64,000 nucleotides of DNA, from NCBI GenBank assembly GCA_028023455.1, contig JAQFVV010000002.1, positions 30,504,001 to 30,568,000 on the forward strand. The letters run 5' to 3'. Shown here one piece after another: positions 1,992-61,437 of the stretch. A program made the translations under genes and the position numbers. The stretch's first letter is position 1, and the number at the start of each line of letters is the position of its first letter. This stretch comes from Epiperipatus broadwayi (Eukaryota; Animalia; Onychophora). A model generated the notes under the pieces. It made no database searches. It saw nothing but the letters and a program-made list of their open reading frames with translations, and had not been told where the DNA came from.

Positions 1992-2542
1992 AAACCACTA
2001 AACACCACATGATCACTGTCTCTTATACTAACACATAACTATTATTAAACAGGCAAAACTCTCCATACAGTAGTGCCACCCTGTGCCAACCAGAGTAATC
2101 AATGGATGCCAGAAGACTTGTGCCTAAAATCCCCATCTAGTGCTTACTCATCCAATATCCCCAGACTAGTTTCTGGCTTGTGGCCTGTGTCAGTGAGGAG
2201 CTTTGGATCTGAGAGCACTGCACCTAGATCTTAGGATCTAATGCAACCCTCCAGCAGCCACGTTTTATCTCTACTTAACTACAAAACTATGAGAATGAAA
2301 TTGAAAACACAATAATATTTTCAATCTAAGCTCAATAGCATATAGTTCATATGGGTCTGAACTCAGTTTAGCACCCATACATTTTGGTGTCTTTGGCTCT
2401 TTAAGAACCATAGCCATTACTATCCTATTAGGCGGGATTGATGTTAAACCACTAAACATCACATGATCACTATCTCTTATACTCACCATCTCTTATTGAT
2501 TACAAAGGCTTGCACTTGGTGGCACTACTGTATGGAAAGTTT
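1992..2542 (-). mobile_element. HHR-1 copy, 454-bp unit with terminal redundancy and a short inverted arm
   Basis: aaaccactaaac at 1992 and 2446; degenerate core (CTGACAC) at 2150-2208; inverted arm 2496-2542 runs into a LINE fragment. Confidence 0.85.
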
Positions 2543-2547
2543 GGTGC

Positions 2548-3592
2548 AAATTGATAAATGAAGCAAAGAAAAGAAAGGGTTTGGTAAAGAAACTAACAGT
2601 ATTTTCATATAATAAATATGATGTAGCTAGAATAGTATGAAAGGAAGTTGCAGTAGCAGGGTTAACATATGGTAATGATGCATTATGTGTTAGTAAAAGG
2701 GTTTTAGATTTAGAGAAAGTACAAAGGGAAGTAGGAAGACATGCATTAGATGCAGAGATGTGGACAGCAAAGAAGGCAATTCAAGGAGAAATGGGATGGT
2801 CAAGTTTTTATATGAGAGATGCAAAAAGTAAAATGAAAATGTTTGGTAGGTTGCAGTTTATGGATAGTAAAAGAATAGCAAAAATAGTGTTCAATTGGGT
2901 TATGAGTAAAGGGCAGGTAACAAGATGGGTAAGAAAGGTAATGTGGTATGCGAAAGATTTGGATAAAGAATTTATATCAGTATACTTATATAAAAGATGG
3001 GATGATTGTGTTAGGAGGATTTTTGAATGTTATAGTGGTAAGGAATGGGATAAAAGAATAGAAGCATTAATAAAAAATGGGGAGTTGGAGAACTAGTATG
3101 GAGGGTAAGAAGAATATTGGATGCGAGTTAATTTATGATAATAGTAAGGAAAGTAGTTTATTATTTAATGCTTGAATGGGATCCTTAGCAACAAGAGAAT
3201 ATACATGTAAATGGGAAACTATGGATGATTTAATGTGCAAATTGTGTAAGGAAGGTATGAAAAATATTAGGCATCTGTTGATTGAATGTAAATGCTTGAA
3301 AGCAGAAAGGGTACAGATAATGAAGTTATGGGAAAATAGACATGAACAAAATGACTATACAGAAAGTGAGTTATTAGTTTTTATGTTGGGTTTGCGAAGA
3401 GATAAGGGGGATTTAGATATAAAGGCTATAGAGTTGACAAAGATTATGTTGTGTAAATGGGATGGGGCAGACTACGGGAAGACTTAAGAGTGGCGAATGG
3501 AAAATAAAGTGGCTAACAGGTTTATCTGGGCATAATTGCTGAGATATTTTTGACTTCGTTTAAGGAGAAGCCAAAAATACATCACATCACAT
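2548..3592 (+). mobile_element. 5'-truncated non-LTR retrotransposon (post-RT region, CCHC zinc knuckle, 3' end)
   Basis: Broken ORFs with CKLCKEGMKNIRHLLIEC; ends in a (CATCA)n-type tail, tacatcacatcacat. Confidence 0.85.
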
Positions 3593-4229
3593 GCTCTTAT
3601 TAATTGATAATACACTTAGAACAATAATAATGCATAAAATAAAAATAGTATAATATATATATATTTTAAAATGTTTTTGTTTTAATTTAATGCCTAATCC
3701 ACCAAAAAGCAAAAAAAAAAAAAAAAAATTTTTTTCTTGGACCACAATTTTAACTGTTATATGTAATTTTAAATAATAAAAACATATTCTGATGTAATTG
3801 TTCAGTGAAATATATATATAACTTTAAATAAAAGCATGGGATTTCCATAAATTAATTAATTCAAGCAATACAGTTTATGATCAAATCAAATACTCTATTA
3901 TAGTTTGAATAGATTAATTTGTGGATGCCCCGTAGTTATTTAAAATATGTATCAGTCAAAATTGTGTTCCAAGAAAATTTTTTTTTTGTTCTTTAGTGCA
4001 TTAGTCCTTAAATTAAATAAAAGCATTTCTTCTTAAAAAATATTTTATATTTATACTATTTTTTTTAGTGTTTGCATATTTTGTTCCAAAAATACATGTG
4101 TACAAAATTTGAGATCTCTTCAATAAAAGTAGGTTAAAAATTGGTTACAAGACTTAATCCAAATAAACTAAAAGAAGAAGTAAAATATAATTATTACCAA
4201 ATTCACCACTTCCTTTACTTTGCTGTAAT

Positions 4230-6083: not shown

Positions 6084-6126
6084 CTGAGAGCATTAAGATC
6101 CTAAGATCAAGATGCAGTGCTATCAG

Positions 6127-9227: not shown

Positions 9228-9400
9228 ATGTGATGTGGCTATTCCCTTACTGAAGTCAGGAATCTCTGTCACTATGCCCAGAAAAGCTTATTAACCATCT
9301 TACTTTCCCTTTCCATTGCCCACCTTAAGTTTTTCCCCATATTCTTCTCTGTCCTTCTCCATCCCATTTCCACAACATCATCTGTCCAATCTAGGTCCTT
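9228..9400 (-). mobile_element. Diverged 3' end of the same LINE family
   Basis: Reverse complement ends ...gggcatagtgacagagattcctgacttcag...gccacatcacat. Confidence 0.6.
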
Positions 9401-10339
9401 AGACAAATAATATATTCTATGCTGACTTCTAAAAAGAGATAACAGCGGTTCTAATTTCTATTTCAGTAAAGACCTTCAAACTAAATTGAAAGTGTGAAAA
9501 TTCTTCATGAAGGAGGCAATTTTTTATAAATATTAATAAAATACATTTAATAAGTACACAAGCTGCTAACATTAAAATACGGGATTCATGGGATTTGAAT
9601 TGATGACATTTGCTTCCGCTTTGTTTTTTTTTTTAAAATTTAATGGCAATTGAGGCAGGTTTAAGAAATTAACCAAAAATATTTCTGCAGATGTAAAGAC
9701 TGTTTTTAATAGTTTATTACCATTAAATTTATTATAATTAGACATATACACACATATGATAAGGTTTTCAGTCCAATTCATGCTTCAATTAGTCTTACTT
9801 TAATTCCAAATATTATAGATACCCACATGTATGTGCATGCACACACATACACATTGTAAGTTATACTATTTTTACTCTGAGATTGCATACATTTTAATGG
9901 TCTTCGAGGTTTACACAAATAATAATAAAAATCAAGACAACCTGTTTTCTTCCTTAGTTGAGTTTCTGATCTATGGAGGCCAAAAGCCTAGAAAATTATC
10001 TTGTTTACTGCTTCCTACTGCAGAAAAAGAAGATGACAATTACTTCTGTGTAATGGTCTGTCTATCTGCTCTTTTTAGAGTACCCTATCCTTCAAGGGGC
10101 TGCAGAAAGGAGTTTGCTATTAACTGAAAGGAGATCCTTTGATTCCTCTTGGAGGCCTTAAAGGAACGGAGCAGGGTAAATTCCTAATGTCCACTCCATA
10201 CGATCTTGTCGTTGCAGCTGTTATTACAATGTGATTATTCATATAGTATACGAACATGGATGGGCTGCTCACCAACATGCATTAGCCAGCACGAAGAGTT
10301 TATTGGCTTTTTACCTCCAAGTTTAAGAATATTTTTTTC

Positions 10340-11692: not shown

Positions 11693-12241
11693 GTCACATG
11701 ATCATTGTCTCTTATACTAGCACATAATTGTTTATAAACAAGGCAAAACTCTCCATACAATAGTGCCACCCCATGCCAAGCAGAGTAATCAATGGATGCC
11801 AGAAGGCTTGTGCATAAAATCCCTATCTAATGCCTACTCATTCAATATCCCCAGACTACTTTCTGGCTTGTGGCCTTTGTCAGTGAGGAGCTTTGGATCT
11901 GAGGGCACTGTACCTAGATCTTAGGATCTAATGAAACCCTCCAGCAACCATCTTTTATCTCTACTTAACTATAAAACTATGAGAATGAAATTGAAAACAC
12001 AAAAATATTTTCAATCTAAGTCCAATAGCTTATACAATCATATGGGTCTGAACTCGTTTCAGCACCCATACATTTTGGTGTCTGTCTCTTTAACAACCAC
12101 AGCCACCACTATTCTATTAGGCAGGATTGGTGTTAAACCATTAAGCATCACATGATCATCATCTTATACTAGCACATAATTGTTTATAAACAAGACAAAA
12201 CTCTCCATACAATAGTGACACACTGTGCCAACCAGAGTAAT
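11693..12241 (-). mobile_element. HHR-1 copy (1.2 units) inserted in an HHR-2 element
   Basis: tcacatgatc repeats at 11694 and 12148 (454 bp apart); caatatcttat on both flanks. Confidence 0.87.
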
Positions 12242-12397
12242 CAATATCTTATATGACTTTATCATTGTTCAGTATATATATATATATAGATAGGGAATTA
12301 CTACAGTTTAGTACCCTCACTACTTTGACACAAACCATTTGATGGAAGTATTTAAATAATTTTTTATTAGTCATTCATTAGTCTAGAAGTGACTCAA

Positions 12398-22713: not shown

Positions 22714-23089
22714 TAGAGAATTACTATCTAATTTTAATAAATGTGTGCGCAACATATGATACATATCACCGCAAATATCATAATAAATAAATATTATTAC
22801 CCATGGATCTTCAGATATCTTCATTCAGCTACAGACCTTGATGATACCATCAAATTTGCTTTTATATCTCTCTAAGTCAGAGAGAGACATGAGACTCTGA
22901 ATCACCATAAATCTATCTTATTTAAAAGACTATAAAGAATATTTTATTACATAAAAATTCATACCCCAAAGTAATGAATATAATAAAAGCTTATAAATTA
23001 TGATAAAAACAATGATTTAAAAATCTACTTAGTCAAGGTATGATTATTGGTAATTTATAATATCCACGAACCTCAAAGCAAATAAATAT

Positions 23090-23755
23090 TACAATAAACT
23101 ATGTTGTGGTTCGAATACAAGGTATTGTTAGTAATCTATCAATGTTGGTTACGATAAACTATATTGTGGTTCGAATTCAAGGTATTGTTAGTAATCTATC
23201 AATGTTGGTTACAATAAACTATATTGTGGTTTGAATACAAGATATTGTTAGTAATCTATCAATGTTGGTTACGATAAACTATATTGTGGTTCAAATACAA
23301 AGGTATTGTTAGTAATCTATCAATGTTGGTTACAATAAACTATACTCCTGGTTCGAATACAAGGTATTGTTAGTAATCTATCAATGTTGGTTATGATAAA
23401 CTATATTGTGGTTCAAATTCAAGATATTGTTAGTAATCTATCAATGTTGGTTATGATAAACTATATTGTGGTTCGAATTCAAGGTATTGTTAGTAATCTA
23501 TCAATGTTGGTTACGATAAACTATATTGTGGTTCGAATACAAGGTATTGTTAGTAATCTATCAATGTTGGTTATGATAAACTATGTTGTGGTTCGAATAC
23601 AAGGTATTGTTAGTAATCTATCAATGTTGGTTATGATAAACTATATTGTGGTTTGAATACAAGGTATTGTTAGTAATCTATCAATGTTGGTTACGATAAA
23701 CTATATTGTGGTTCGAATTCAAGGAATTGTTAGTAATCTATCAATATTGGTTATA
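23090..23755. repeat. 60-bp minisatellite, about 11 copies
   Basis: Unit aaactatattgtggttcgaatacaaggtattgttagtaatctatcaatgttggttacgat repeats directly with no spacers. Confidence 0.95.
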
Positions 23756-27124: not shown

Positions 27125-27281
27125 ACTCTCATATTACCCAATAAATAACTAGTATTATTTATTAATCTGTAAATTGAAGCCTTAAAAGGTAAGAGAAAAA
27201 ATGTTTTCCCTTCTCATTAATTTAAAAATTTTTAAAATCAAACTTACAAATACTTTTATTAAATATAATATTAAAACAGTA

Positions 27282-28050
27282 ATGTGATGTGATGTATTGT
27301 ACCTTCTCCTTAAACGGAGTCAAGAATCTCTCAACAATTATGCCCAGAGAAACCTGTTAGCCATTTTATTTTCTATTCCCAGTCTAAGTTTTCCCATATT
27401 CTGCTCCATCCCATTTCCACAACATAATCTTTGTCAACTTTATGGCCTTTATATCTAAATCCCCCTTGTCTTTTTCCAAACCCAGCATAAAAACCAATAA
27501 TCCACTTTCTATATAATCACTTTCTTCATATTTATTCTTCCATAACTTCATTAAATGTGCCCTTTCTGTTTTCAAGAATTTACATTCAATTAACAGATGC
27601 CTAATATTTTCTATTCCTTCCTTACATAATTTACAGACTAAATCATCCATATTTTTCCACTGACATGTATATTCTCTTGTTGTTAAAGATCCCATTCGAG
27701 CCTTAAACAATAAACTACTTTTTATTATCATATATTAACTCACACCTAATATTCTGTTTATTTCTATATATATTTAAACTCTTTTTACTCTCCATACTAG
27801 TTCTCCATCTCTCTAACTCCCTATTCTTTATTAATAAATCTATTCTTTTATCCCATTCCTTACCACTATAACACTCAACAATCCTCCTAACACAATCATC
27901 CCATCTTTTGCATACCGCATTACCTTTCTCACCCATCTTGTTACCTGCCCTTTACTCATAACCCAATTAAATACTATTTTGTCTATTCTTTTATTATTCA
28001 TAAACTGCAATCTACCAAGCATTTTCATTTTACTTTTTGCATCTCTCATA
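27282..28050 (-). mobile_element. Same LINE, truncated and internally deleted
   Basis: ORFs 27384-28076; tail at 27282-96. Confidence 0.85.
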
Positions 28051-28259
28051 AAACTCTCCATATAGCAGTGCCACAACAGTGCAAATCATAGTAATTAATG
28101 GATGCAAGAAGTTTTTGCATGTAAAATTCCTATCTAGTGCCTACTCATCCAATATTCTCAGACTAATTATTAGCTTGTGGCTTTCATCAATGAACAGCTT
28201 TGGATATGAGGGCACTGTGCATAAATCTTAAGAATCTAAAATTTACGTGGTGTTTTCAG

Positions 28260-28318
28260 ATCCAAGGCTCTTCACTGATGAAAGCCACAAGCTAGAAACT
28301 AGTCTGGGGATATTAGAC
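28260..28318 (+). ncRNA. HHR-1 hammerhead
   Basis: CTGATGA 28275-81, GAAACTAGTC 28295-304, stem I TCTTCA/TGGGGA with G-U pairs. Confidence 0.85.
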
Positions 28319-28407
28319 GAGTAGGCACGAGGGACTTTAGCACAAACCTTCTTGCATCCATTGATTACTCTGGCTTGTACTATGTGGCACTACTGTATGA
28401 AGAGTTT

Positions 28408-28473
28408 GTTATTGGGCATAGTGGCTAAGAGATTCCTGACTCCGAAAAAGAAACAGTCCACAGTGCATCACAT
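28408..28473 (+). mobile_element. Same LINE family, ~65-bp extreme 3' end
   Basis: gggcatagtggctaagagattcctgac...ccacagtgcatcacat resembles the 3' UTR of the longer copies. Confidence 0.6.
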
Positions 28474-30329
28474 ATTGTTTTAACAGCTTGGGTCAGTGTA
28501 GGAAATGGCGATTTGGGTGATATTTAGTGATTTAAATATAATATTCATAATAAAATCAAATAATGATAACTAAGTCAATATAATCCAAAGCAAATTGTTT
28601 TCTTTGAAAATAGTTTATAAGATTACTTGTAGTTGTCTTAAAGTTAATGTAAATCAAAGTAAATTTAGTTCTAATGAAAAAGTTAAAATTCATAAAAGTA
28701 GAGTTAAAAACGCTTTGTAAATTCATGAATTTAATACAGGTATTATCTTATATATATATAAAAAAAAAAAGAATTGAAAAGAAGAATTAAAAAACTATGA
28801 CAATAAATTTTTTTGAATTGGAAGCCATCAGTCTTATAAAGACTTCCTTTGATATTAACGATAGGTGGAGTTTAGAATAAATTATAAAAATGGTTGGTCT
28901 ATTATAAGTAATGATGTTACCTGTTTATACTTCTTCTATATGGTATGTAATAAATATAATAAGTGTGCTTATATACAACTATAGAGAAACTTGTTATTTC
29001 TATAAATTAAATATGGCCAATAAACATCACATGATCACCATTTCTTATGATTGCTTATAACTGTTATTAAAACAGGCAAAACTCACTATATGAGTGAGTG
29101 GCAATATGTATAGTGAGTTTTGCTTGTTTTAAATTAAATATGGCTTAGTGCATTTAAGAACTTATGGCATTCTCATATTCTTAGCAAGATGAACTATAAT
29201 CATAATGGCGAGATGAGTGTAATTATATATATTTGAAGAGATTAAAGTTTATTTAAATTTGATATTAAATATTTAAATTAGTGTCCTTTTTTTGGAGAGA
29301 GGGGAGGATGAATCTCTACAGTTGTTAGCGTTAGACTGTTATATATAAATGAATTTGAGAAGGTCTATTTTTGCATTAGGCAAAACCATGGTTATGACAA
29401 AATTTTAATATAAGTTTGTTATTTTACTAGTATTTTAATATCATATGATTTTCTATTTAATTTTATTTATTATTACTAGGAAAGCATTAAGCAGTATTTA
29501 ATAATAATTAAATAAGAAATATATATGCTAAAATAAAATAATATATATTTAAAAATATTCCAAAAATACATTCAATTACATAAAGTGTCTCAATATTTTC
29601 AAATTAAACATATGACTAATATTTCAATCAATATTATACGTAACAGAACAGGAAGTAACAAGCTAAGAGACAAATAGCATCATCGGTCTCTTGAAGAGTT
29701 TATTTATGTTATATAACTCAGTACAAGTTCAGTTACTTCCTGTTCAGTTACATATCATCTAAGTCATTTATTATTTACAATTAATGTCATAGTATATTTC
29801 TCATACTTATTTTTTCTTTCTGATTTTATATAGCTTAACAAATAGTAATAAAATAAATAATTAGTACATACATAAGCATAAAAGATTAATTAAAACATTA
29901 ATCCTAATCCATTTTTGTAAATTATCTAATGATCATCTGCAAAATATCAAACATAATTTTAATAAATGAACGTACTGCTCTCTATCGTGCAAACTTTAAA
30001 GTTTAGTAGATTTTGAGCAATGTCAGTCAATACCGTAACCTAAAATAAGCAATTTAAGCTGTGCTTGTTTTAGACAAACCAATGTAATTAGCAAATAAAG
30101 TGTTTAGAATCTTGGCATACCTACAGAAGCTGGTTTTAACTGAAACATGTAGCTGAGAACTTGAACTGATGATGGTAACTGTTAGTATTATTTGGAACTT
30201 AGATTCAGGAACTTAGCAGAAGAGCATTTTAGAGTCCTCAGAAGACTCAACAAAGTATGGACAGATGTTAGGAATAACAGAAACAGATGGAAAATGGTGA
30301 AAGAATAGATATTACTGATACTATTTCAA

Positions 30330-31486: not shown

Positions 31487-31800
31487 TTAAAATTCAATTC
31501 CGAATTTTTCAAAGTTTCTTAATATAATGGACAACTGTAAGTGGATTTTGCCCATTGTAATTGTCTGCAAGCGATATCGATCAGCACCCATGTAAATGAG
31601 GTCAGGATTTTTCAACTGTATCGAACCTCCTACAAAATACATCTTTAATTCTTCCTGCATTGTACCTGAAGGCCTCCATGTAACACAGGTTAATTCATGA
31701 AATCCTGGAGAAGTTGGAACATGACAAAATCCGTATCCATATAGTTCATTGCGACCAAATTTATCATGGTGCCATATTTGAAAATGAAGTTTTGGCCAGC
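31487..31800 (-). CDS. B9D2: B9D2 last coding exon
   Basis: atttatttag acceptor, then (G)[34 protein letters not shown]...GADRYRL...[10 protein letters not shown]. The spliced product is 175 aa, typical of B9D2. Confidence 0.96.
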
Positions 31801-33364
31801 CTAAATAAATAAAACATGCACATATAAAATACATGCGAAAAATGTACAAGTACAATATATCTCTATTTGTGAGTGTATGAATGCATAATGTACATGTAAA
31901 AAATAAATATTCTTAAATAGACCATTGCAAAGCAAAGATTACCCAGCATTCCTAAAAAAAAAACTACAGGAGAAGCTAGTAGGATAGAATATCCTAGTTA
32001 ATCAGGATTTTAGAGATTTTTCTTTTCTGTTTGTCATCCAGCTTATAATAGTTAATTACCTATTATTAACTAATAGTTGTTTACTAGATACAAATTTGAA
32101 GTTTATTTGAAAACAATTACTTAAAATTTCCCATGTTCCACCTAAATTTGAATCCTAATTTACAAGTATGGCAAATAGATGCATTAACCAGTATATATAT
32201 ATATACATGGGTTTTTAGATGTTTTTATATGTACATCAATATAATATATATCAAGCAATGTTGGAATTCTTCTATGGTGGAGATAATTACGTAATTATAT
32301 ATATTTTTTTTACATGAAATCTTCATTAACTATAATTAACTGGGATTGAAAGAATATCATAGATAATACATTCATGAAACAATAAAATTTAATTGTAATT
32401 TGTTCAGACAAAACTTAATATTATAGGCAAATTTACAATGTGATTTAATAAAGATATTTATTCATAAGTGATATAAGTTATTTTTTTAAAATATCAACAA
32501 CAAACTGTTAAAAAAATATCAACAACAAACTGTTAAAAAAAATACTGATATAGGATTAATAATTTAAATGAATTTTCATTAAACATTACATTAAATTCTC
32601 AAAACGTATGTTTTCTTCTTTGCTTGCAGTACGTTGAATAATCAATGACTTTTGAAAGTAAAAAATATATTTCTAGATTTCTCCGTTAAAACTAAACTTA
32701 AAATGCAGTCATCATTAAAGCAAGTGTTAAAAAAAAAGTATTAACCTATTCACAGAACAAACAAGTCTGAATACATTACTAAGATAATTTCCAAGCCGAA
32801 TTCCCAAGGAGTCATTTAAATGAATTTGTAAATATCGCCCACATTTTGTTATATCAATGCCAATTGATTTTGTTTAAATGATTATTTGGGAATCTAGTCT
32901 GTGAATTATCTTTGCCATTTCAGACATTTATTCCATAAATAGATTTATATTCTTAGTGCTATATATTTGATAAGCTGTAAAATTATTTATATATTCATTA
33001 AAATCATTAGAATTTTTTTTAAAAAAGTATTAAAATCAAACAAACAAACAATTTAATTTTTTTAATTGTAGCAAATTTGCATTTTACTCTATGCAAATTA
33101 GTGAATCTATATCATAATTCTTCAACTGGATTTTCATTTCAGCAACCAGGAGGAATTCTCTAACACTCCTTATCCATATAAAGGATGCCCATGATATCCA
33201 TGTGCAATTGAAAAAAATTATAACTTTATTTGTGATAGAAAAAAATTATAAAAAGTATTAGAAAGCTTAATGAACCTAGTTTAAAATAAAATTATTTAGT
33301 AACTCTTCAACACAATAATTTTTTGAAACTTTAAAAATACTTCTTTTTCAGAAATTACTGATCC

Positions 33365-52731: not shown

Positions 52732-52947
52732 ATTAAAACAGGCAGATCCAAGGCTCCTCACTGATGAAAGCCACAAGCTAGAAACTAGTCTGAGGATATT
52801 AGATGAGTAGGCACTAGATAGGGATTTTATGCACAAGCCTTCTGGCATCCATTGATTACTCTGGCTTGCACTATTATATGGAGAGTTTTGCCTGTTTTAA
52901 TAACAGTTATGAGCAAGCATAAGAAATGGTGATCATGTGATGTTTTA
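52732..52947 (+). mobile_element. HHR-1 copy with a 13-bp inverted left arm
   Basis: attaaaacaggca at the left end is the reverse complement of the internal tgcctgttttaat; ends at gatcatgtgatgtttt. Confidence 0.87.
52746..52804 (+). ncRNA. Type I hammerhead ribozyme, family HHR-1 (best copy)
   Basis: Stem I TCCTCA(52755-60)/TGAGGA(52791-96); CTGATGA 52761-67; stem II AGC-CACAA-GCT; GAAA 52781-84; palindromic stem III ACTAGT; GTC triplet with predicted cleavage after 52790. Confidence 0.9.
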
Positions 52948-53089: not shown

Positions 53090-54815
53090 GTCAAATCTTT
53101 GAAATTTGACTTATAATTTGTTAAAACTATTTGCAGCAATTCTATGAAAAACTGATTGGTAAACTGTGAACAATATTTTGACTTCACGAACTTCACTGCG
53201 GAGTACCAAAAACTGAAGTTAGACAGCAAGAAGTTTTCTTTAAATGGGGATATTTTGCTTTTAGCACTAGTTTCCCAAATTCAATTAGAGAATTAGATTT
53301 ATGATGCATTTGCAATATCTGATCCTCTTTCACCTCTCATAAACTCGAATTCCCCAACCACTATTTCGACAAGTATTATTTCGGAAATTGGAAATCTATC
53401 TTCAACAATATCACAAATAAATAGATTCACAAAATAAGCAAATGTGGATTTAAAAATTTTCAAATCTTCAAACCTACATTTGAACTCCGTTTACAATCCT
53501 TTCAATTTTTCTTTTGTTTCATCTAATTTTTCTTTTGATATTAAGTAAATTTGCTTTTATAAAATATTCTGGACTTAAAATCATGTACAAACAGTTGAAG
53601 TTTAGCTTCAAAACTAAATACAGTTTGTGACAAATCACTAATCATTTTTCTGTTTTCTTGTAAAGCCAAATTAAGTGTTTGCAAATGTTCCATAATGGGT
53701 GTAAGGAATATTAAGTCAGAAAGCCAAGTTTCATTTTCTAATTCTGGATATTTGTTTTCCTTTTTTTTAAAAAAATGTCATGATAGGATTTGTAAGTTGA
53801 CAGTCATATTATAACAGACCATAAGCGGAGATCATGGGGCAATTCATATGTTTCATCATTAAACTTTTCTAAAAAGTTCTTAAATTGACGGTGCATTTTG
53901 GCATTTGTTCTAATTAAATTCACAATCTGCAAATCAATCTTCCACACATTTTTGTCTTTTAAGCACTTCACTATGATGCTAGTGGTCAATTATGCAATGA
54001 AAAGGTATAACACATGGAATTTTAGGTCAATGTTTAAAAAATCAATAAGACCCCAGGTTTTCTCCTATAATTCCAAGAGATCTGTCAGTCACAACATTTA
54101 CAAGTTTATCACAAGGCAATTCCAACATATTTATTACATCATTAAGGATATTTTGCGAGTTGTTTTGGTAAGAGCTAGTAGGTCTAACATTTATTCCTTC
54201 ACATTTATGTCCATAGCGGACAAAAACAACCAATTGTGGAACATCCTGAATGTCCGTAGACTCGTCGAGAGCTAAACTGAATGCTATACAATTTTTCAAA
54301 TCACACATCAAACTATTTTCAAAATTTTTACTAATTTCACCAATATGACACTCAGTTGTACAGTGTGACTTAGGAATTTGTATGATCAATTTATATAGCT
54401 TTGTATTATCCAGATCCAAAACTTTAACCACTTCTTCCAAGTTTCTTTTAATAAATTCCACTTCTCCATATAGTTGAATAGCATGAACAATATTCCAAGC
54501 TATCAAAAAATTAGCTTCACTGGCTCTATCATCTTCATGACTAAAGGAAGACAAGAGTTAAAGACTTGATTGTAATGACGAAAGTTTCTCTGTTCGCAAT
54601 TTTGAATTGGGTGGATATGGAGTTGGAAAATGGGGACGACTTACTTTGTAATGCTGACATAAACTGCTTATTTTAAAGTTTGCAATTGTAACTTTACAAA
54701 TAAGACCCAATGACTTTCCATTATTGTCAATAAAAGCAAATTTTTCTACTCATTCTTTCTGAGAGCCTCTATTTTCTTATCTGTATTTTCATTTTTTGAT
54801 ATTTTCTGATGTCAT
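53090..54815 (-). pseudogene. Degraded hAT transposase (GTF2IRD2/SPIN-Charlie-like)
   Basis: FSLALDESTDIQDVPQLVVFVRY, an N-terminal C2H2-like remnant and C-terminal KFVKSKYCSQ; many stops and frameshifts. Confidence 0.85.
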
Positions 54816-54840: not shown

Positions 54841-55458
54841 CAGCACAAAATACGTCTATTGGTGATTATTTATCTTTTCTACATGTGTGTGGTCATGTGT
54901 ATCAGTAGTATGAGATAGTGTGGATAGTTGAAGGTTGCTTGAAAGTCTGAGTTCAAATCCCCTACATTTACAATTAAATTCCAGGTATAAGAATGCCTGT
55001 ATTTCAAATCGTACACATTAAGCCTGCATTCTGCCTATCCCTCTTCTATGTATTTAAATGGATACTGTCCTATACATGAGGGGTCAGAGTGACTTGAGGT
55101 CAACATGGGCATAAAAACAATATTGGTATCGGCATGGGATTTGGGCATTCTATCATCAGATTTTCAATGGTATGGATGGTTGAGGAGTTGGAGTAGATTG
55201 AAGACTGTCCATTAAAGTATAAAGATTTGCTATCTTAATACAAACTGAGCACTGATTATATATATATGCGTGAGAGATGGTAATCTGGACCAACTGATGA
55301 GTGCTGGTTCAGCACGAAATACGTACATTGGTGATTATTTATCTTTTGTACATGTGTGTGGTCATGTGTATCAGTAATATGAGATAGTATGGATAGGTGA
55401 AGGTGAGTTCAAATCCCTTATATTTACTATTAAGTTCCAGGTATAAGAATGCCTGTGT
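54841..55458 (+). mobile_element. HHR-2 element, 469-bp unit with ~140-bp terminal direct repeat
   Basis: cagcac-(g/a)aaatacgt...gaatgcctgt at 54841-55000 and 55310-55458. Confidence 0.8.
55282..55336 (+). ncRNA. Type I hammerhead, family HHR-2
   Basis: AATC-TGG-ACCAA CTGATGA(55294-300) GTGCTG-GTT-CAGCAC GAAA(55316-19) TACGTA CA TTGGT-GATT. U16.1 is C in this copy but T in the upstream partial copy (TACGTCTA, 54851-58). Confidence 0.8.
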
Positions 55459-56210: not shown

Positions 56211-56496
56211 CCTGACAGAGATATTTTAAGTGCTGGCTCTGGCTAAGCATTTATCATAAAGCTTGAAGAGGAATTGGCAATCCTCACTGTTTATAACTTA
56301 CAAGCTTAAGAGATAGGGTCATGTGATCTATGAATTGATCTATGACTCTTATTTTGACTATTCAAGTAATAAAAATGTTTGATAAAAATTTCTACCATAT
56401 TACAAATTTTTTGTGCAATTAAAAAAAATCTGAAATATTAAAAATAAAATCGGATTTCAATGAGAGTCCACCATTGCTATACATTATTAAAAATGA

Positions 56497-56763
56497 AACC
56501 GCTAAACATCACATGATCACCATTTTCTGTTTATAAAAGCTGTTAAACCAGTGTCAGATTCTCCATATACTCAGACAGTGCAAGTCATAATAATCAAAGG
56601 ATGCAAGAAAGTTTGTGCATAAAATCTAAGACTCTTCACTGATGAAAACTAGAAACTAGTCTGTGATATTTGATAAGTAGGTACTAGACAAGAATTTTAT
56701 GCACAAACTTTGCATCCATTTATTATTATGATATGCCCTGGATGGCACTACTGTATGGAGAGT
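56497..56763. mobile_element. HHR-1 fold-back joined to a LINE fragment
   Basis: Core CTGATGA-AAACTA-GAAACTAGTC at 56639-61 (stem II collapsed); the LINE follows tatggagagt. Confidence 0.8.
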
Positions 56764-56765
56764 GT

Positions 56766-57873
56766 AGCTTGGATGAATGGGAGAAAAAATTGATAAATAA
56801 AGCAAAGAACAGAAAGGGATTGATAAAGAAATTAACAGTGTTTTCGTATAATAAATATGATGTAGCTAAAATTGTATAAAAGGGAGTGGCAATAGCAGGG
56901 TTAGCATATGGTAACAATGTATTATGTGTTAGTAAAGGGGTGTTACATTACTTAGAAAAAGTACAGAGAAAAGTAAGAAGACATGCGTTAGATGCAGATG
57001 TGTGGATGACAAAGGAGGCAATTCAAGAAGAAATGGGAAGGCTAAGTTTTTATATGAGAGGTGCAAAAAAAAAAAGTAAAATGAAAATGTTCTGTAGATT
57101 GCAATTTATGGATAATAAGAAAATAGCCAAAATAGTATTTAATTGGTTTATGAGTAAAGAACAGGCAACAAGATGGGTGAGAAAGGTAGTATGATATACA
57201 GAAGATTTGGATAAAGACTTTATTGTCAGTATATTTATATAAAAGGTGGGATGATTGTATTAGGAAAAATTGTTGAATGTTATAGTGTCAAGAAATGGCA
57301 TAGAAGAATAGGTGCATTAATAAAGAATAGGGAGTTGGAAAGATGGAAACTAGTATGTAGAGTAAAAAGAGTTTAAATATATATAAAGTAAACAGAATAT
57401 TGGGCGCGAGTTAATTTATGATAATAGCAAGGAAAGTAGTTTACTATTTAAGGCTCGAATAGGATCTTTAGAAATAAGCGAATATACACATAAATGGAAA
57501 AATATGGGAGATTTAGTCTGCAAGTTGTGTAAGGAAGACATAGAAAATATTAGGCATTTTTAATTGAATGTAAATGATGACAAACAGAAAGAGTACAAAT
57601 AATGAAGTTGTGGGAGAATAAATATAAACAAAGTGATTATACAGAAAGTGTGTTATTGGTTTTTGTGCTAGGTTTTGGGAAAAGATAAGGGAGATTTAGA
57701 TATAAAGGCCATGGAGTTGACAAAGATTATGTTGTGGAAATGGGATGGAGCAGGATAGAGAAGAATATGGGAAAAACTTAGGATGGGGAATGAAAAGGAA
57801 GATAAGGTGGCTAACAGGTTTCTTTGGGTATAGTGCTAAGAGATTCAGGAGAAGCCACAGTTCATCGCATCAC
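56766..57873 (+). mobile_element. Same LINE, longest copy in the window, degraded
   Basis: Colinear with 2548-3592; tail catcgcatcac. Confidence 0.85.
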
Positions 57874-58204
57874 GATATTAAAAATGTATGCCATTGCTGC
57901 CACTGTGGCATGTCAATAGTTCAAAGATAGTAATAGTCCTTTTTTTCCTCAAGGAAGCAATTATCAATTTACATCCATAAAACAAAATTTCTTCTTCGAC
58001 TTCTTTATTGCTTTAGCAATTATTCTTATATATCAGTTAAACAAATACTCCTTTCTTTATACACTTTTTACAATAATACTATCCCTAGGTATATTGGTTT
58101 AAAACATTTCTTTTATAAAAATTAATGATATTATATTAATAATAATGTAATTATAAAAAACAAATAGAGAGGGAGGTATTATTCAAAGTTAAGTAATTAC
58201 AGAA

Positions 58205-58340
58205 ATTTGGGTTCTTAGTTTTTAGGCCGGGTTTGGAAAAAGATAAGGGGGATTTAGATATAAAGGCCATAGAATGGACAAAGATAATGTTGTGGAAATA
58301 GGGTGGGAGCAGGAGAGCAAAAAATATGCAAAAAACTTAG
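58205..58340 (+). mobile_element. Internal fragment of the same LINE
   Basis: ggaaaaagataagggggatttagatataaaggccatag matches the other copies. Confidence 0.7.
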
Positions 58341-58344
58341 TCTT

Positions 58345-58640
58345 TAATTGAAATCACTATAATATTTTCAATGCAAGCTCATTAGCCCAGATAATCATAT
58401 AGTTTTGTAGTTGAGATAAAAGATGGCTGCTGGAGGATTGTATTATATCCTAAGATCTAGGTGCAGTGCTCTCAGATCCAAGGCTCCTCACTGACAAAGG
58501 CCACAAGCCAGAAATTAGTCTGGGGATATTGGATGAGTAGGCACTACATGGGTATTTTATGCACAAGCTTTCTGGCATCCATTGATTACTCTGGCTTGCA
58601 TTGAGTGGCAATACTTATAGAGAGTTTTGCCTGTTTTAAT
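58345..58640 (+). mobile_element. HHR-1 copy, core CTGACAA
   Basis: GGC/GCC stem II; GAAATTAGTC at 58511-20. Confidence 0.85.
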
Positions 58641-59658
58641 TTTTCCTAATGATAAATGATCTCTTTTCTCATATGATGCTTATAATGCATATTTGATTTT
58701 TTCCTATTCCAGTCCACTTTTTAATTTATTAAGACCCTAAATTGTGTATATATCCATGTTCTGAATGTTGGGGGGGGGGGGATTCAGTCTTAGAATCTTT
58801 AAAACTTGTTGAGCATGCTTTTGAGAATCTTAGCATCATATATACCATTCTGTTGTCCAAAAACCAAAAAATGAAATATTTAAATTAGTCATTTACATAA
58901 TGTCCACCTTATTTAAATATCACAACACACCCTGCATATTATGAGTGCTACGATTCTGACCGTAATAGTCGAAAGCAAACTCAGCAAGTTTTAAAGATTT
59001 TAAGACTGAATAATCTTTTATTTTTCAAACATTCAAAACTTTGATATATACACATTACAACTAAAAGAAGTAAAGAATAAACTATTCGAATTAATACCTA
59101 AAATGTTGACCTTTTCAAGCTATAAAAATCTCTCACAACACCGAAAATACCAAATCACATTATTCCTCTCATTAAGCGTAATCCTGTGATTATCAAAAAG
59201 CCATGATAAAAATGGTGTCACAAAATGGCGTTATGTCACAAAAAAAACCTTGAAGTATTCTCTCATCATATGTATTTAATTTCACAGAGAATACATGTGA
59301 AGACTTATAAAAAGTAAAGATTGATTTTAGAAAAGAATCAAGACTATCAATTTAAGATAAGTAGTTGATATTAAGAGCTGAAAGTTAAAATATTTTATTC
59401 TGAAAGAGAAATAAAAAAATAAAATAGTTTGGGTTAGTTCCAAACATCTACAAAACAAACGTTATATCAACTAAAATAAAATAAGACCTTCAAATTGATA
59501 AGAAGTTTTGCAACAAGAGAATATGTATCAAAAAAATACAGCATACAATTATGATAGGTAAAAGTATTATCATTTAGCTTCAATAGTCAAATATAGAGAT
59601 ATTTCAGGAAAGACAAAAAAAAAAAAATTATAATAAAATGATTAGTTAAAACAGTAAT

Positions 59659-60917
59659 ATGATGTGATGTATTGTGGCTTCTTCTTAAACAAAGTCAAGA
59701 ATATCTCAGCAATTATATCCAGATAAACCTGTTAGCCACTTTATTTTCCATTCCCCACTCTAAATTTTACCATATTCTGCATCATCCCATTTCCACAACA
59801 TAATCTTTGTCAACTCTATAACCTTTATATCTAAATCCCCTTTATCTTTTCCCAAACCCAGCATAAAAAACAATAATTCACTTTCTGTATAATCACTTTT
59901 TTCATATTTATTCTTCCATAACTTCATTATATGTACCCTTTCTGTTTTCAAGCATTTACATTTAATTAACAAATGCCTAATATTTTCTATTCCTTCTTTA
60001 CATAATTTACAAAATAAATCACCCATTTTTTTCCATTTACATGTATATTCTCTTGTAGCTAAAGATCCCGTTCGAGCCTTAAATAATAAACTACTTTCCT
60101 TACTATTATCATATATTAACTCACACCTAATATTCTGTTTATTTCTATATATATTTAAACTTTTTTTACTATCCATACTATTTCTCCATCTCTCTAACTC
60201 CCTATTCTTTATTAATAAATCTATTCTTTTATCCCATTCCTTACTACTACAACACTCAACAGTCCTCTTAACACAATCATCCCATCTTTTGTACAAATAT
60301 ACTGATGTGATGTATTGTGGCTTCTCCTTAAACGAAGTCAAGAATATCTCAGCAATTATGCCCAGATAAACCTGTTAGCCACTTTATTTTCCATTCTCCA
60401 CTCTAATTTTTCCCATATTCTGCTCCATCTCATTTCCACAACATAATCTTTGTCAATTCTATAACCTTTATATCTAAATCCCCTTTATCTTTTCCCAAAC
60501 CCAGCATAAAAACCAATAATTCACTTTCTGTATAATCACTTTTTTCATATTTATTCTTCCATAACTTCATTATATGTACCCTTTCTGTTTTCAAGCATTT
60601 ACATTCAATTAACAAATGCCTAATATTTTCTATTCCTTCCTTACATAATTTAAAAAATAAATCACCCATTTTTTTCCATTTACATGTATATTCTTTTGTA
60701 GCTAAAGATCCCGTTCGAGCCTTAAATAATAATCTACTTTCCTTACTATTATCATATATTAACTCACACCTAATATTCTGTTTATTTCTATATATATTTG
60801 AACTCTTTTTACTCTCCATACTATTTCTCCATCTCTCTAACTCCCTATTCTTTATTAATAAATCTATTCTTTTATCCCATTCCTTACTACTATAACACTC
60901 AACAATTCTCTTAATAC
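59659..60917 (-). mobile_element. Two head-to-tail 3' fragments of the same LINE
   Basis: ORFs 59760-60341 and 60430-60951; tails at 59659-71 and 60303-14; joined through atcagtat microhomology. Confidence 0.87.
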
Positions 60918-61437
60918 AAACTCTCCAGACAGTAGTGCCACCCTGTGGCAAACAGAGTAATCAATGGATGTTAGAAGGTTTGTGCATAAAATCCCTATCT
61001 ATTGCCTAGTTATCCAGTATCCCCAGACTAGTGTCTAGCTTGCTTGTGATTTTCATCAGTTAGGAGCCAAAATGTATAAATGCTGAACTAAGTTCAGATC
61101 TGCATAACTGTACAAGCGAATTTGAAAACATTATTGTTTTCATTTTAAATTTGTAGCTTTATAGTTAACTAAATAGATAAAAGGTGGCTGCTGGGGGTTG
61201 CATTAGATTCAAAGATCTAGGTGCAATGCTCTCAGATCCAAGTCTCATCACTGACGAAAGCCACAAGCTAGAAACTAATCTGGGAATATTGGAGGATTAA
61301 GCACTAGACAGGAATTTTATGCATAAACTTTTAGCATCCATTGTTTACAAGGGTTTGCACTGGGTGGGCCTTAGGGTATGAAGAGTTTGCGATTATTTAA
61401 TAGCTTGTGTATGCATACAAAATGGTGATCATGTGAG
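60918..61437. mobile_element. HHR-1 fold-back, left arm joined to a LINE
   Basis: Minus core 61012-68 (GACA for GAAA), plus core 61236-93. Confidence 0.85.
61236..61293 (+). ncRNA. HHR-1 hammerhead (N7=C, ATC triplet)
   Basis: CTGACGA 61251-57, AAGCCACAAGCTA, GAAACTAATC 61271-80. Confidence 0.7.

Follow-up and report, generated by a model that had tools for sequence, protein, structure and literature searches.

How does one retrotransposon come to be joined, again and again, to a single point inside a ribozyme-bearing repeat? The question is raised by a 64-kb stretch of the genome of the onychophoran Epiperipatus broadwayi (contig JAQFVV010000002.1, positions 30,504,001 to 30,568,000), the whole of which is referred to here as the window. 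The window is AT-rich (29% G+C) and filled by one repeat, HHR-1, which carries a predicted hammerhead ribozyme. The original prediction held that a long interspersed nuclear element (LINE) is joined repeatedly to one site of this repeat. That core claim is borne out: one LINE family has been joined repeatedly and independently to one point of HHR-1. Our sample is this single window, and proportions drawn from it are therefore weak.

Five junctions at one point of HHR-1

The HHR-1 unit is 454 nt long, and the copy at 2444→1991 (minus strand) serves as its reference. The unit boundaries were defined from copies longer than one unit, such as 2509→1991 and 12245→11695. The motif GGCACTACTGTATGGAGAGT is found 24 times in the window at up to three mismatches, versus none expected by chance. 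In the unit, the motif ends at position 389, followed by a subfamily-specific 'box' at 392-404 (e.g. TGCCTGTTTAA) and then by a 'tail' ending at ~450-454 (...GATCATGTGATGTTTAGTGG).

The five LINE 5' junctions claimed to lie after this motif are confirmed at 2541, 56764/5, 28050 (minus), 60917-60920 (minus) and 28408. All five LINE parts are in the orientation of the ribozyme and follow ...GGAGAGT(TTT/G) at unit 387-393. The distance from the predicted cleavage position, previously put at 100-105 nt, is ~102 nt (unit 287 to the motif end at 389). As claimed, the LINE parts are of very different length (~1,052, 1,111, 768, 617 with a tandem copy of ~645, and 65 nt), and their breakpoints lie at about LINE positions -16, 1, 268, 466 and 982. 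Microhomologies are seen at the HHR-1/LINE junctions, namely AGTTTT at LINE#3, GTTT at the 65-nt piece, and TTG.

The claim that HHR-1 bases resume after the LINE tail stands in part. The repeat is complete downstream of one of the five LINEs, at 28474-28531, where a target-site duplication (TSD) follows. Three others have just 9-13 nt of it, at 27273-27281, 59646-59658 and 3593-3603, and then unrelated DNA. After LINE#2 in compound k, which ends at 57875, such bases are absent. The LINE that starts from 60919 is followed directly by a second LINE copy.

The five junctions are independent events, because closely related LINEs carry HHR-1 arms as different as random arms. The arms attached to LINE#3 and LINE#4 are 76.2% alike (LINE parts, 92.6%), and those attached to LINE#1 and LINE#2 are 74.5% alike (LINE parts, 84.8%). 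Among all LINE-attached arms, likeness is 74-83%, as it is between random pairs. An origin of all chimeras in one ancestral fusion had been named beforehand as the counter-explanation to be tested, and the objection is removed by attached arms as divergent as random ones.

The junctions lie in four LINE-bearing compounds, listed here with a further LINE fragment. TSD chance levels were estimated from 3,000 random placements.

Compound f: LINE#3, both HHR-1 arms, the 65-nt LINE piece and the tail, enclosed by a 14-bp TSD
27259-27272: left TSD, 14 bp TTAAATATAATATT; exact 14/14 match with 28532-28545; at least 14 bp in 7 of 3,000 random placements
27273-27281, minus: HHR-like box between the LINE#3 end and the TSD, TACTGTTTT, unit ~393-401
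27282-28050, minus: LINE#3, ~768 nt, LINE positions ~268-1054 of the longest copy; ends ...ACATCACAT
28050-28239, minus: HHR-1 arm joined at its 3' end to LINE#3, unit 204-390, with a mutated core (TTGATGA, AATAAT)
28231-28407, plus: HHR-1 arm, unit 206-389; intact hammerhead core at 28275-28304, predicted cleavage after 28304
28409-28473, plus: LINE#6, the terminal 65 nt of the 3' untranslated region (UTR) of a diverged LINE, between unit 389 and 392; 71% identical to the LINE#1 tail
28474-28531, plus: HHR-1 box and tail, unit 392-454, to the normal 3' end; no other tail in the window is more than 75% like it
28532-28545: right TSD, 14 bp

Compound 1
1991-2509, minus: HHR-1 long arm, a complete unit 1-454 at 1991-2444 plus ~50 nt of upstream-unit tail to ~2494; 3' end at 1991
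2495-2540, plus: short inverted HHR-1 arm joined to LINE#1, unit 342-389
2541-3592, plus: LINE#1, ~1,052 nt, C-terminal part of open reading frame (ORF) 2 with a CCHC/zf-RVT-like motif
3593-3603, plus: box after LINE#1, GCTCTTATTAA; then unrelated DNA

Compound k
56485-56495: left TSD, 11 bp TATTAAAAATG; at least 11 bp in 10 of 3,000 random placements
56496-56626, minus: HHR-1 long arm, unit 314-453; its 3' end adjoins the left TSD
56646-56764, plus: HHR-1 arm joined to LINE#2, unit 266-387
56765-57875, plus: LINE#2, ~1,111 nt; its own 3' end ...CATCACGA adjoins the right TSD (57876-57886), with no HHR-1 bases between

Compound m
59646-59658, minus: box after LINE#5, ATTACTGTTTTAA; then unrelated DNA
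59659-60306, minus: LINE#5, ~645 nt, LINE positions ~436-1052; head-to-tail at the LINE#4 3' end via ATCA
60303-60919, minus: LINE#4, ~617 nt, LINE positions ~466-1049; joined to the HHR-1 arm at 60917-60920 (TTTG)
60917-61067, minus: HHR-1 arm on LINE#4, unit 244-389, A-type subfamily, mutated core (GACAC)
61067-61435, plus: inverted HHR-1 long arm, unit 58-439

Separate fragment
9236-9410, minus: LINE#7, diverged 5'-truncated LINE 3' end, no HHR-1 on either side

The predicted hammerhead of HHR-1

HHR-1 carries a predicted hammerhead of the canonical metazoan type I, and its self-cleavage is likewise a prediction. The ribozyme locates at unit ~237-300, with a helix I of 6 bp plus an outer 6 bp, the core CUGAUGA and a short helix II. 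The 3' part of the core reads GAAAC-UA-GUC, and cleavage is predicted after the GTC of GAAACTAGTC, at unit position 287. The exact pattern CTGATGA-N13-GAAACTAGTC occurs in eight copies, versus none expected. Across 24 copies, the core columns are at least 90% conserved, and 89% of cells pair in the proposed structure, versus 26-40% with slid partners. Covariation is seen in helix II (AU to GC in five sequences, CG to AU or UA in two). Helix III has 2 bp and is closed by the palindromic ACUAGU, which corresponds to the dimer-dependent form of metazoan hammerheads (PMC4209133).

Rfam gave no hammerhead match at gathering score in the whole window, and none at E up to 10 in 28040-28540. Its microRNA 'hits' at the locus merely reflect the inverted repeat and were discarded. 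Folding HHR-1 as a circular RNA revealed no consistent accessible loop at unit 387-404.

It had also been suggested that the LINE is 5'-processed by the ribozyme, and the anatomy of the junctions lends this no support. The attached arms start at unit 342, 266, 204, 244 and 206. Four of the five cross the cleavage site or lack the core, one core in five is intact, and no full-length LINE is present in the window.

Fold-back architecture of HHR-1 copies

Nearly every HHR-1 copy is a fold-back, in which two arms meet head to head at a variable inversion point. In ~14 fold-backs, one arm ends at unit 450-454 (the tail) and the inverted arm at ~399-402 (the box). Exact TSDs of 10-15 bp directly adjoin the arm ends in seven fold-backs. 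The copy at 2509→1991 consists of ~50 nt of the tail of an upstream unit and then one complete 454-nt unit (2444→1991). At 12245→11695, a partial upstream copy of ~110 nt (motif, box, tail) precedes a near-complete unit.

In plain fold-backs, the partner arm ranks 1-9 among 10-38 copies, yet the two arms are non-identical even with a perfect TSD. Since the arms are related but not identical, they seem to have been copied from two templates, or from two units of one template, and not by snap-back. Snap-back (hairpin) second-strand synthesis was rejected as the origin of the fold-backs, in view of the ~50 nt present on one arm only and of arms that differ despite perfect TSDs.

By its sequence, HHR-1 is a non-autonomous 'retrozyme'-type repeat with a Penelope-like insertion architecture. 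Insertions of Penelope-like elements are described as forming partial tandems, with a 5'-truncated copy lying next to them in inverted orientation and an extension that is confined to one end (PMC8557442). In its type of hammerhead and in its terminal redundancy, HHR-1 matches the animal retrozymes that lack long terminal repeats (non-LTR) (PMC7229834).

We notice that the inversion centres of fold-backs f and a (28231-28239 and 6090-6116) both lie at unit ~200-206, within the near-palindrome ...TTAGATCCTAAGATCTAGG..., and that other inversion centres lie near the helix III palindrome ACTAGT. Such palindromes may be where two antisense cDNAs anneal. Another arrangement occurs at 58198-58636, where a LINE fragment lacking its last ~90 nt (58198-58330) is followed by HHR-1 in the classical twin-priming form. 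There, at 58329-58636, an inverted segment (unit 163→86) lies just 5' of a direct one (unit 155-398) with an 8-nt overlap, unlike the symmetric fold-backs elsewhere.

The LINE family

The window contains eight LINE fragments, which represent only the C-terminal part of ORF2, ~350 codons. The zf-RVT match of this part is weak (E 3e-5, below Pfam's cut-off). Its nearest full-length homologues, with 31-34% identity over the C-terminal domain, have Exo_endo_phos (an apurinic/apyrimidinic, AP, endonuclease) and RVT_1. Because of the C-terminal ORF2 domain and these homologues, the element is classified as a true LINE, probably of the AP-endonuclease type, and not as a Penelope-like element (PLE). 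A Protein Atlas search yielded no clade name for it.

The LINE 3' UTR terminates in (ACATC)n-AT at all seven 3' ends, and the LINE RNA ends in (ACAUC)n-AU. Between the LINE 3' tail and the HHR-1 unit we found no significant similarity in either orientation. The idea of HHR-1 as a short interspersed nuclear element with a LINE tail was dropped on this ground, the 8-mer CATCACAT in common being at chance level. This 8-mer is the LINE 3' terminus, and it is present antisense in 10 tails in the window, in nearly every HHR-1 tail (e.g. 2457-2464, 12146-12153, 56507-56514). The end of the LINE RNA is complementary to 8-9 nt of the HHR-1 tail, which is at chance level statistically and might matter for pairing.

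The LINE copies are 92.6% (#3/#4), 96.1% (#4/#5) and 84.8% (#1/#2) identical. LINE#3 is young, with at most 3.5% private changes, and LINE#7 (9236-9410) is a more diverged fragment without HHR-1 on either side. Dating by private substitutions was abandoned. The counts come from unequal samples (5 LINE copies vs 43 HHR-1 arms) and are not comparable, and the arms are perhaps 'old at birth', should old loci have supplied the transcripts that were copied. A metagenome source of further LINE copies was also discarded: the 22 loci from a scan of Joint Genome Institute (JGI) contigs with a conserved 19-mer are chance matches, none of them homologous to the LINE or HHR-1.

Anatomy of the LINE-bearing compounds

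In the LINE-bearing compounds, the LINE 3' segment lies in the box-end arm, between unit 387-393 and the box. A fixed HHR-1 end is joined to variable LINE positions in the same orientation, as for template-switch chimeras. Compound k differs in that the LINE's own 3' end replaces the box end. Within its exact 11-bp TSD (chance ~0.3%) lie LINE#2, the arm that stops at unit 387 and an inverted arm with the tail. LINE#2 bears HHR-1 at its 5' end, and an HHR-1 tail lies at the other end of the same TSD. Since the right TSD adjoins the canonical LINE 3' end without HHR-1 bases, the LINE was presumably primed at an ordinary AT-rich site.

This compound makes it plausible that the LINE supplies the reverse transcriptase (RT) for HHR-1, because a single integration seems to have used the LINE 3' end at one nick and the HHR-1 3' end at the other. 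Caution is advised by the Penelope-like architecture of HHR-1 and by the lack of a 3' tail in common.

In compound f, the 14-bp TSD is separated from the LINE end by 9 HHR-like bases, and in compound k the 11-bp TSD stands at the LINE end itself. No TSD was found for compounds 1 and m. The arms of compound f are 76-81% alike despite the perfect 14-bp TSD and the young LINE#3, which fits arms copied from different templates in what may be one recent event. Partner arms in f, m and 1, which are LINE-bearing fold-backs, resemble each other no more closely than random pairs do (ranks 16/24, 21/26 and 19/38).

The original prediction read 28474-28525 as proof of insertion into the repeat. The unit does run to its normal end there, at 28531, but the two flanks of the 65-nt LINE piece are discordant. 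The upstream arm is 93% like the copy at 52886, whereas the downstream box and tail are at most 75% like any copy. Such flanks would be odd as the halves of one interrupted copy.

We also notice that the 13-mer ATTACTGTTTTAA is identical after LINE#3 and LINE#5, which form one lineage (alpha), and that it matches only 1 of ~24 HHR-1 copies. At the LINE#3 end, its AT is the last two LINE#3 bases and its AA the first two bases of the TSD. Meanwhile, the arm upstream of LINE#4/#5 is A-type: its identity is 88-91% with A-type copies and 76% with the C-type copy. Given this identical rare 13-mer and, in compound m, its mismatch with the subfamily of the upstream arm, the box bases are not evidence of fresh insertion. 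The 'next HHR-1 bases' after LINE#3 and LINE#5 seem to belong to the LINE lineage, possibly by way of a master copy embedded in an HHR-1 unit. A wider version of this idea, in which the box (unit 392-404) is LINE-derived in every short arm, was rejected, as the box type co-varies with HHR-1 subfamily in plain copies.

In the LINE#4-LINE#5 tandem, the 5'-truncated LINE#5 is joined to the 3' end of LINE#4 through ATCA, a 4-nt microhomology, with neither HHR-1 nor box between. A jump from one LINE RNA onto the 3' end of another would leave such a junction.

Occurrence in public sequencing runs

Both repeats occur in enormous numbers among the contigs of four public runs from three organisms. These contigs are short, 150-300 nt in repeats, and for one run ~172,000 of them were compared. 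Among the matches listed, the commonest continuation after the motif is the canonical box, and the best-supported contig joints are mostly switches between the two fold-back arms. Runs labelled as other, related organisms and as RNA show the LINE and HHR-1 both at very high depth (27200-28600). One 281-nt contig from an RNA-labelled run matches 28413-28600 with two differences, which would mean either that the locus is transcribed or that the library contained DNA.

Origin of the chimeras

We consider it on balance probable that the five junctions are chimeras of the U6/L1 kind, produced by a template switch from LINE RNA to HHR-1 RNA within one integration event, in twin-primed fold-backs. 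Our observations concern the anatomy, from which we infer the following steps. Both nicked strands of a staggered break at an AT-rich target would prime cDNA synthesis (twin priming). One strand would prime on the HHR-1 3' tail. The template for the other would be the HHR-1 box or a LINE RNA, which may be bare or have a transduced HHR-1 box. After a variable distance, the cDNA would leave the LINE RNA at a GUUU-type microhomology and resume on the abundant HHR-1 RNA at one acceptor point (...GGAGAGUUU). Finally, the two antisense cDNAs would be joined head to head. Candidates for the fixed acceptor point are the 3' end of a processed HHR-1 RNA and the first accessible bases upstream of an enzyme-held 3' module.

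Several observations weigh against such a switch. In three compounds, HHR-1 bases lie on both sides of the LINE with a loss of 0-3 nt, as in a clean insertion, so that a template switch then needs LINE RNA that already carries an HHR-1 box, or two switches. At LINE#1 a D/E-type arm goes with a D-type box, and at LINE#3 a C-group arm with a C-type box, so that in both cases the flanks agree in subfamily. HHR-1 is attached to every one of the five well-preserved LINE copies, which is far above the frequency of U6/L1-type chimeras and suggests systematic coupling. The contrast in arm ranks between LINE-bearing and plain fold-backs is not significant (4 vs 9 compounds, one-sided rank-sum p ~0.1, hand calculation). 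The fixed acceptor point lacks an explanation, and microhomology is equally expected from 5' end-joining at a DNA target. Indeed, the fixed HHR-1 point, variable LINE points, constant orientation and microhomology are predicted by template switching and by site-specific integration alike.

A stronger form of coupling can be proposed, which we offer tentatively as a possible though doubtful extension. The LINE and the hammerhead retrozyme would be an obligatory pair, in which the RT completes almost every integration by a hop to retrozyme RNA at one point, with the opposite strand primed on the tail.

Site-specific integration, as in R1, Tx1L and R2, is the rival closest to the original prediction of a LINE that targets a ribozyme repeat. 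In this account, genomic HHR-1 DNA would be recognised by the LINE endonuclease and RT, the nick would fall at ...GGAGAGTTT^, and the LINE would enter between unit 389 and 392 with variable 5' truncation. The recurrent single joining point stands, with a 5' flank constant within ~3 nt in all five copies and an unvarying orientation. In four cases the repeat picks up again behind the LINE tail with 0-3 nt lost, at 28474-28531 with its full tail. Concordant flank subfamilies for LINE#1 and LINE#3, and LINE parts that look younger than the divergence of the host arms suggests, also speak for it. The mechanism is nevertheless not the best supported one. The TSD of compound k adjoins the LINE 3' end with no HHR-1 after it, and compound m has an A-type arm upstream and a C-type box downstream, this box being identical to that of LINE#3. 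The flanks of the 65-nt piece disagree (93% vs at most 75%). The 14-bp TSD of compound f is perfect, which suits a young compound rather than a later hit on an old fold-back. The short arm carries four of the five LINEs, each 10 nt before the end of that arm, and no long arm contains a long LINE part. The family is also found outside HHR-1 sites, LINE#2 being primed at an AT-rich site and LINE#7 having non-HHR flanks, although the window is a small sample for this. Taken together, we judge site-specific integration rather unlikely, though still a serious rival.

Two further accounts are less probable still. In one, which we hold to be improbable, Penelope-like machinery mobilises HHR-1 with LINE RNA as an occasional passenger, or the joints arose by DNA-level recombination or repair at a fragile palindromic repeat. 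Such machinery would suit the partial tandems of HHR-1, the adjacent inverted 5'-truncated copy, the ~50-nt extension at one end and the variable 10-15-bp TSDs (architecture in PMC8557442), the proposed derivation of animal retrozymes from Penelope pseudo-LTRs (pLTRs) (2026 preprint, 10.64898/2026.07.22.740005), and the LINE 3' tail's lack of significant similarity to the HHR-1 unit. However, compound k ends exactly at the canonical LINE 3' terminus, which is the mark left when an enzyme recognises LINE RNA and primes on it. Among the scanned ORFs of at least 120 aa, in a search that was not exhaustive, we saw neither a Penelope-type RT nor a GIY-YIG ORF. Repair joints would not keep the orientation, the fixed HHR-1 point and intact LINE 3' ends. 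The other account, one ancestral LINE-in-HHR fusion that later spread with internal losses, is highly improbable. In its favour, the starts of LINE#1 and LINE#2 lie within ~16 nt, and the boxes of LINE#3 and LINE#5 are identical. The block 'LINE tail + box + tail' of the 65-nt piece also has many relatives of at least 80% likeness among the contigs of the genome, with a summed depth of 34,000-58,000 versus a few hundred to ~1,500 in unique flanks. As a sole explanation, the fusion is contradicted by the arms of LINE#3/#4 and LINE#1/#2, which differ like random ones, and deletions at random would not have left the left breakpoint within unit 387-393 every time.

Implications

Which enzyme spreads the abundant hammerhead 'retrozymes' of animals is an open question. 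Their 2020 description left the mobiliser as 'LINEs or PLEs' (PMC7229834), and a 2026 preprint argues for Penelope-like elements on phylogenetic grounds (10.64898/2026.07.22.740005). Our literature search found no report of LINE-hammerhead chimeras. LINE-retrozyme chimeras within one TSD would be direct footprints of a LINE RT copying retrozyme RNA. If the obligatory pair were true, the long search for the mobiliser of an animal retrozyme would end with this LINE. In turn, LINE integration would use the retrozyme as a 5' adaptor, and master LINE copies would reside inside retrozyme units. If integration were site-specific, a LINE that targets a ribozyme-bearing repeat would also be new. In any case, the recurrent junction provides a precise, testable handle: its ends are defined, it marks a single acceptor or target point, and copies abound in several related species.

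Other features of the window

A tandem array at 23089-23754, with a 60-bp period and ~11 copies at ~94% identity, is unrelated to HHR-1 and the LINE. At 31487-31855 (minus), an ORF has a strong match to the B9-C2 ciliary basal-body domain (E 4e-35) and looks like an exon of a host B9-domain gene among the repeats. Two overlapping opposite-strand ORFs at 53898-54554 (125 and 170 aa) have no Pfam match, and they lie just upstream of a candidate second hammerhead family (54841-55458).

Comparison with known systems

The junctions share variable 5' truncation, a constant upstream flank and a fixed orientation with site-specific LINEs such as R1 (28S ribosomal DNA), Tx1L (Tx1D transposon) and TRAS/SART, and as with Tx1L, the partner is itself a repeat. 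Unlike in these elements, one of the copies terminates in an ordinary AT-rich target and has a TSD of its own, and the downstream 'target' bases match the LINE lineage and not the upstream arm. In contrast to R2 with its 5' ribozyme resembling that of hepatitis delta virus, we found no evidence here for hammerhead processing of the LINE RNA.

HHR-1 resembles metazoan non-LTR retrozymes and Penelope pLTRs in its predicted type-I hammerhead with a 6-bp helix I, short helix II and 2-bp helix III. It also resembles them in its partial tandems, inverted 5'-truncated copies, one-end tail and TSDs longer than 4 bp. On the other hand, HHR-1 occurs here as dispersed fold-backs and not as long tandem arrays, and it is fused physically to a LINE, not to a Penelope-type RT.

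In the chimeras of U6 small nuclear RNA (snRNA) with human L1, and in the WEIRD-MGL 'MINE' chimeras of Magnaporthe, a fixed RNA end is joined to a variable LINE point. The LINE-HHR-1 compounds agree with these in the fixed end and the variable LINE 3' part, the constant orientation, the single TSD (compound k) and the microhomology at the switch. They differ in their partner, which is a repeat with a self-cleaving ribozyme (cleavage predicted) and not an snRNA. Moreover, the acceptor point is internal to the genomic HHR-1 unit, 12 nt before one end, and is not a known RNA 3' end. Chimeras are here the rule (5/5 preserved LINE copies), they lie within inverted fold-backs, and three of them keep 9-13 HHR-1 bases after the LINE.

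In L1 twin priming, both target strands prime cDNA, which gives head-to-head inverted segments within one TSD (5' inversions). HHR-1 likewise has head-to-head inverted segments in one TSD, both target strands having apparently primed cDNA, and 58329-58636 displays the classical form. In HHR-1, however, the arrangement is nearly universal, and the second priming site is fixed, at unit ~400 or at the 3' end of the LINE. The arms also overlap over much of their length, and in many cases they come from different templates.

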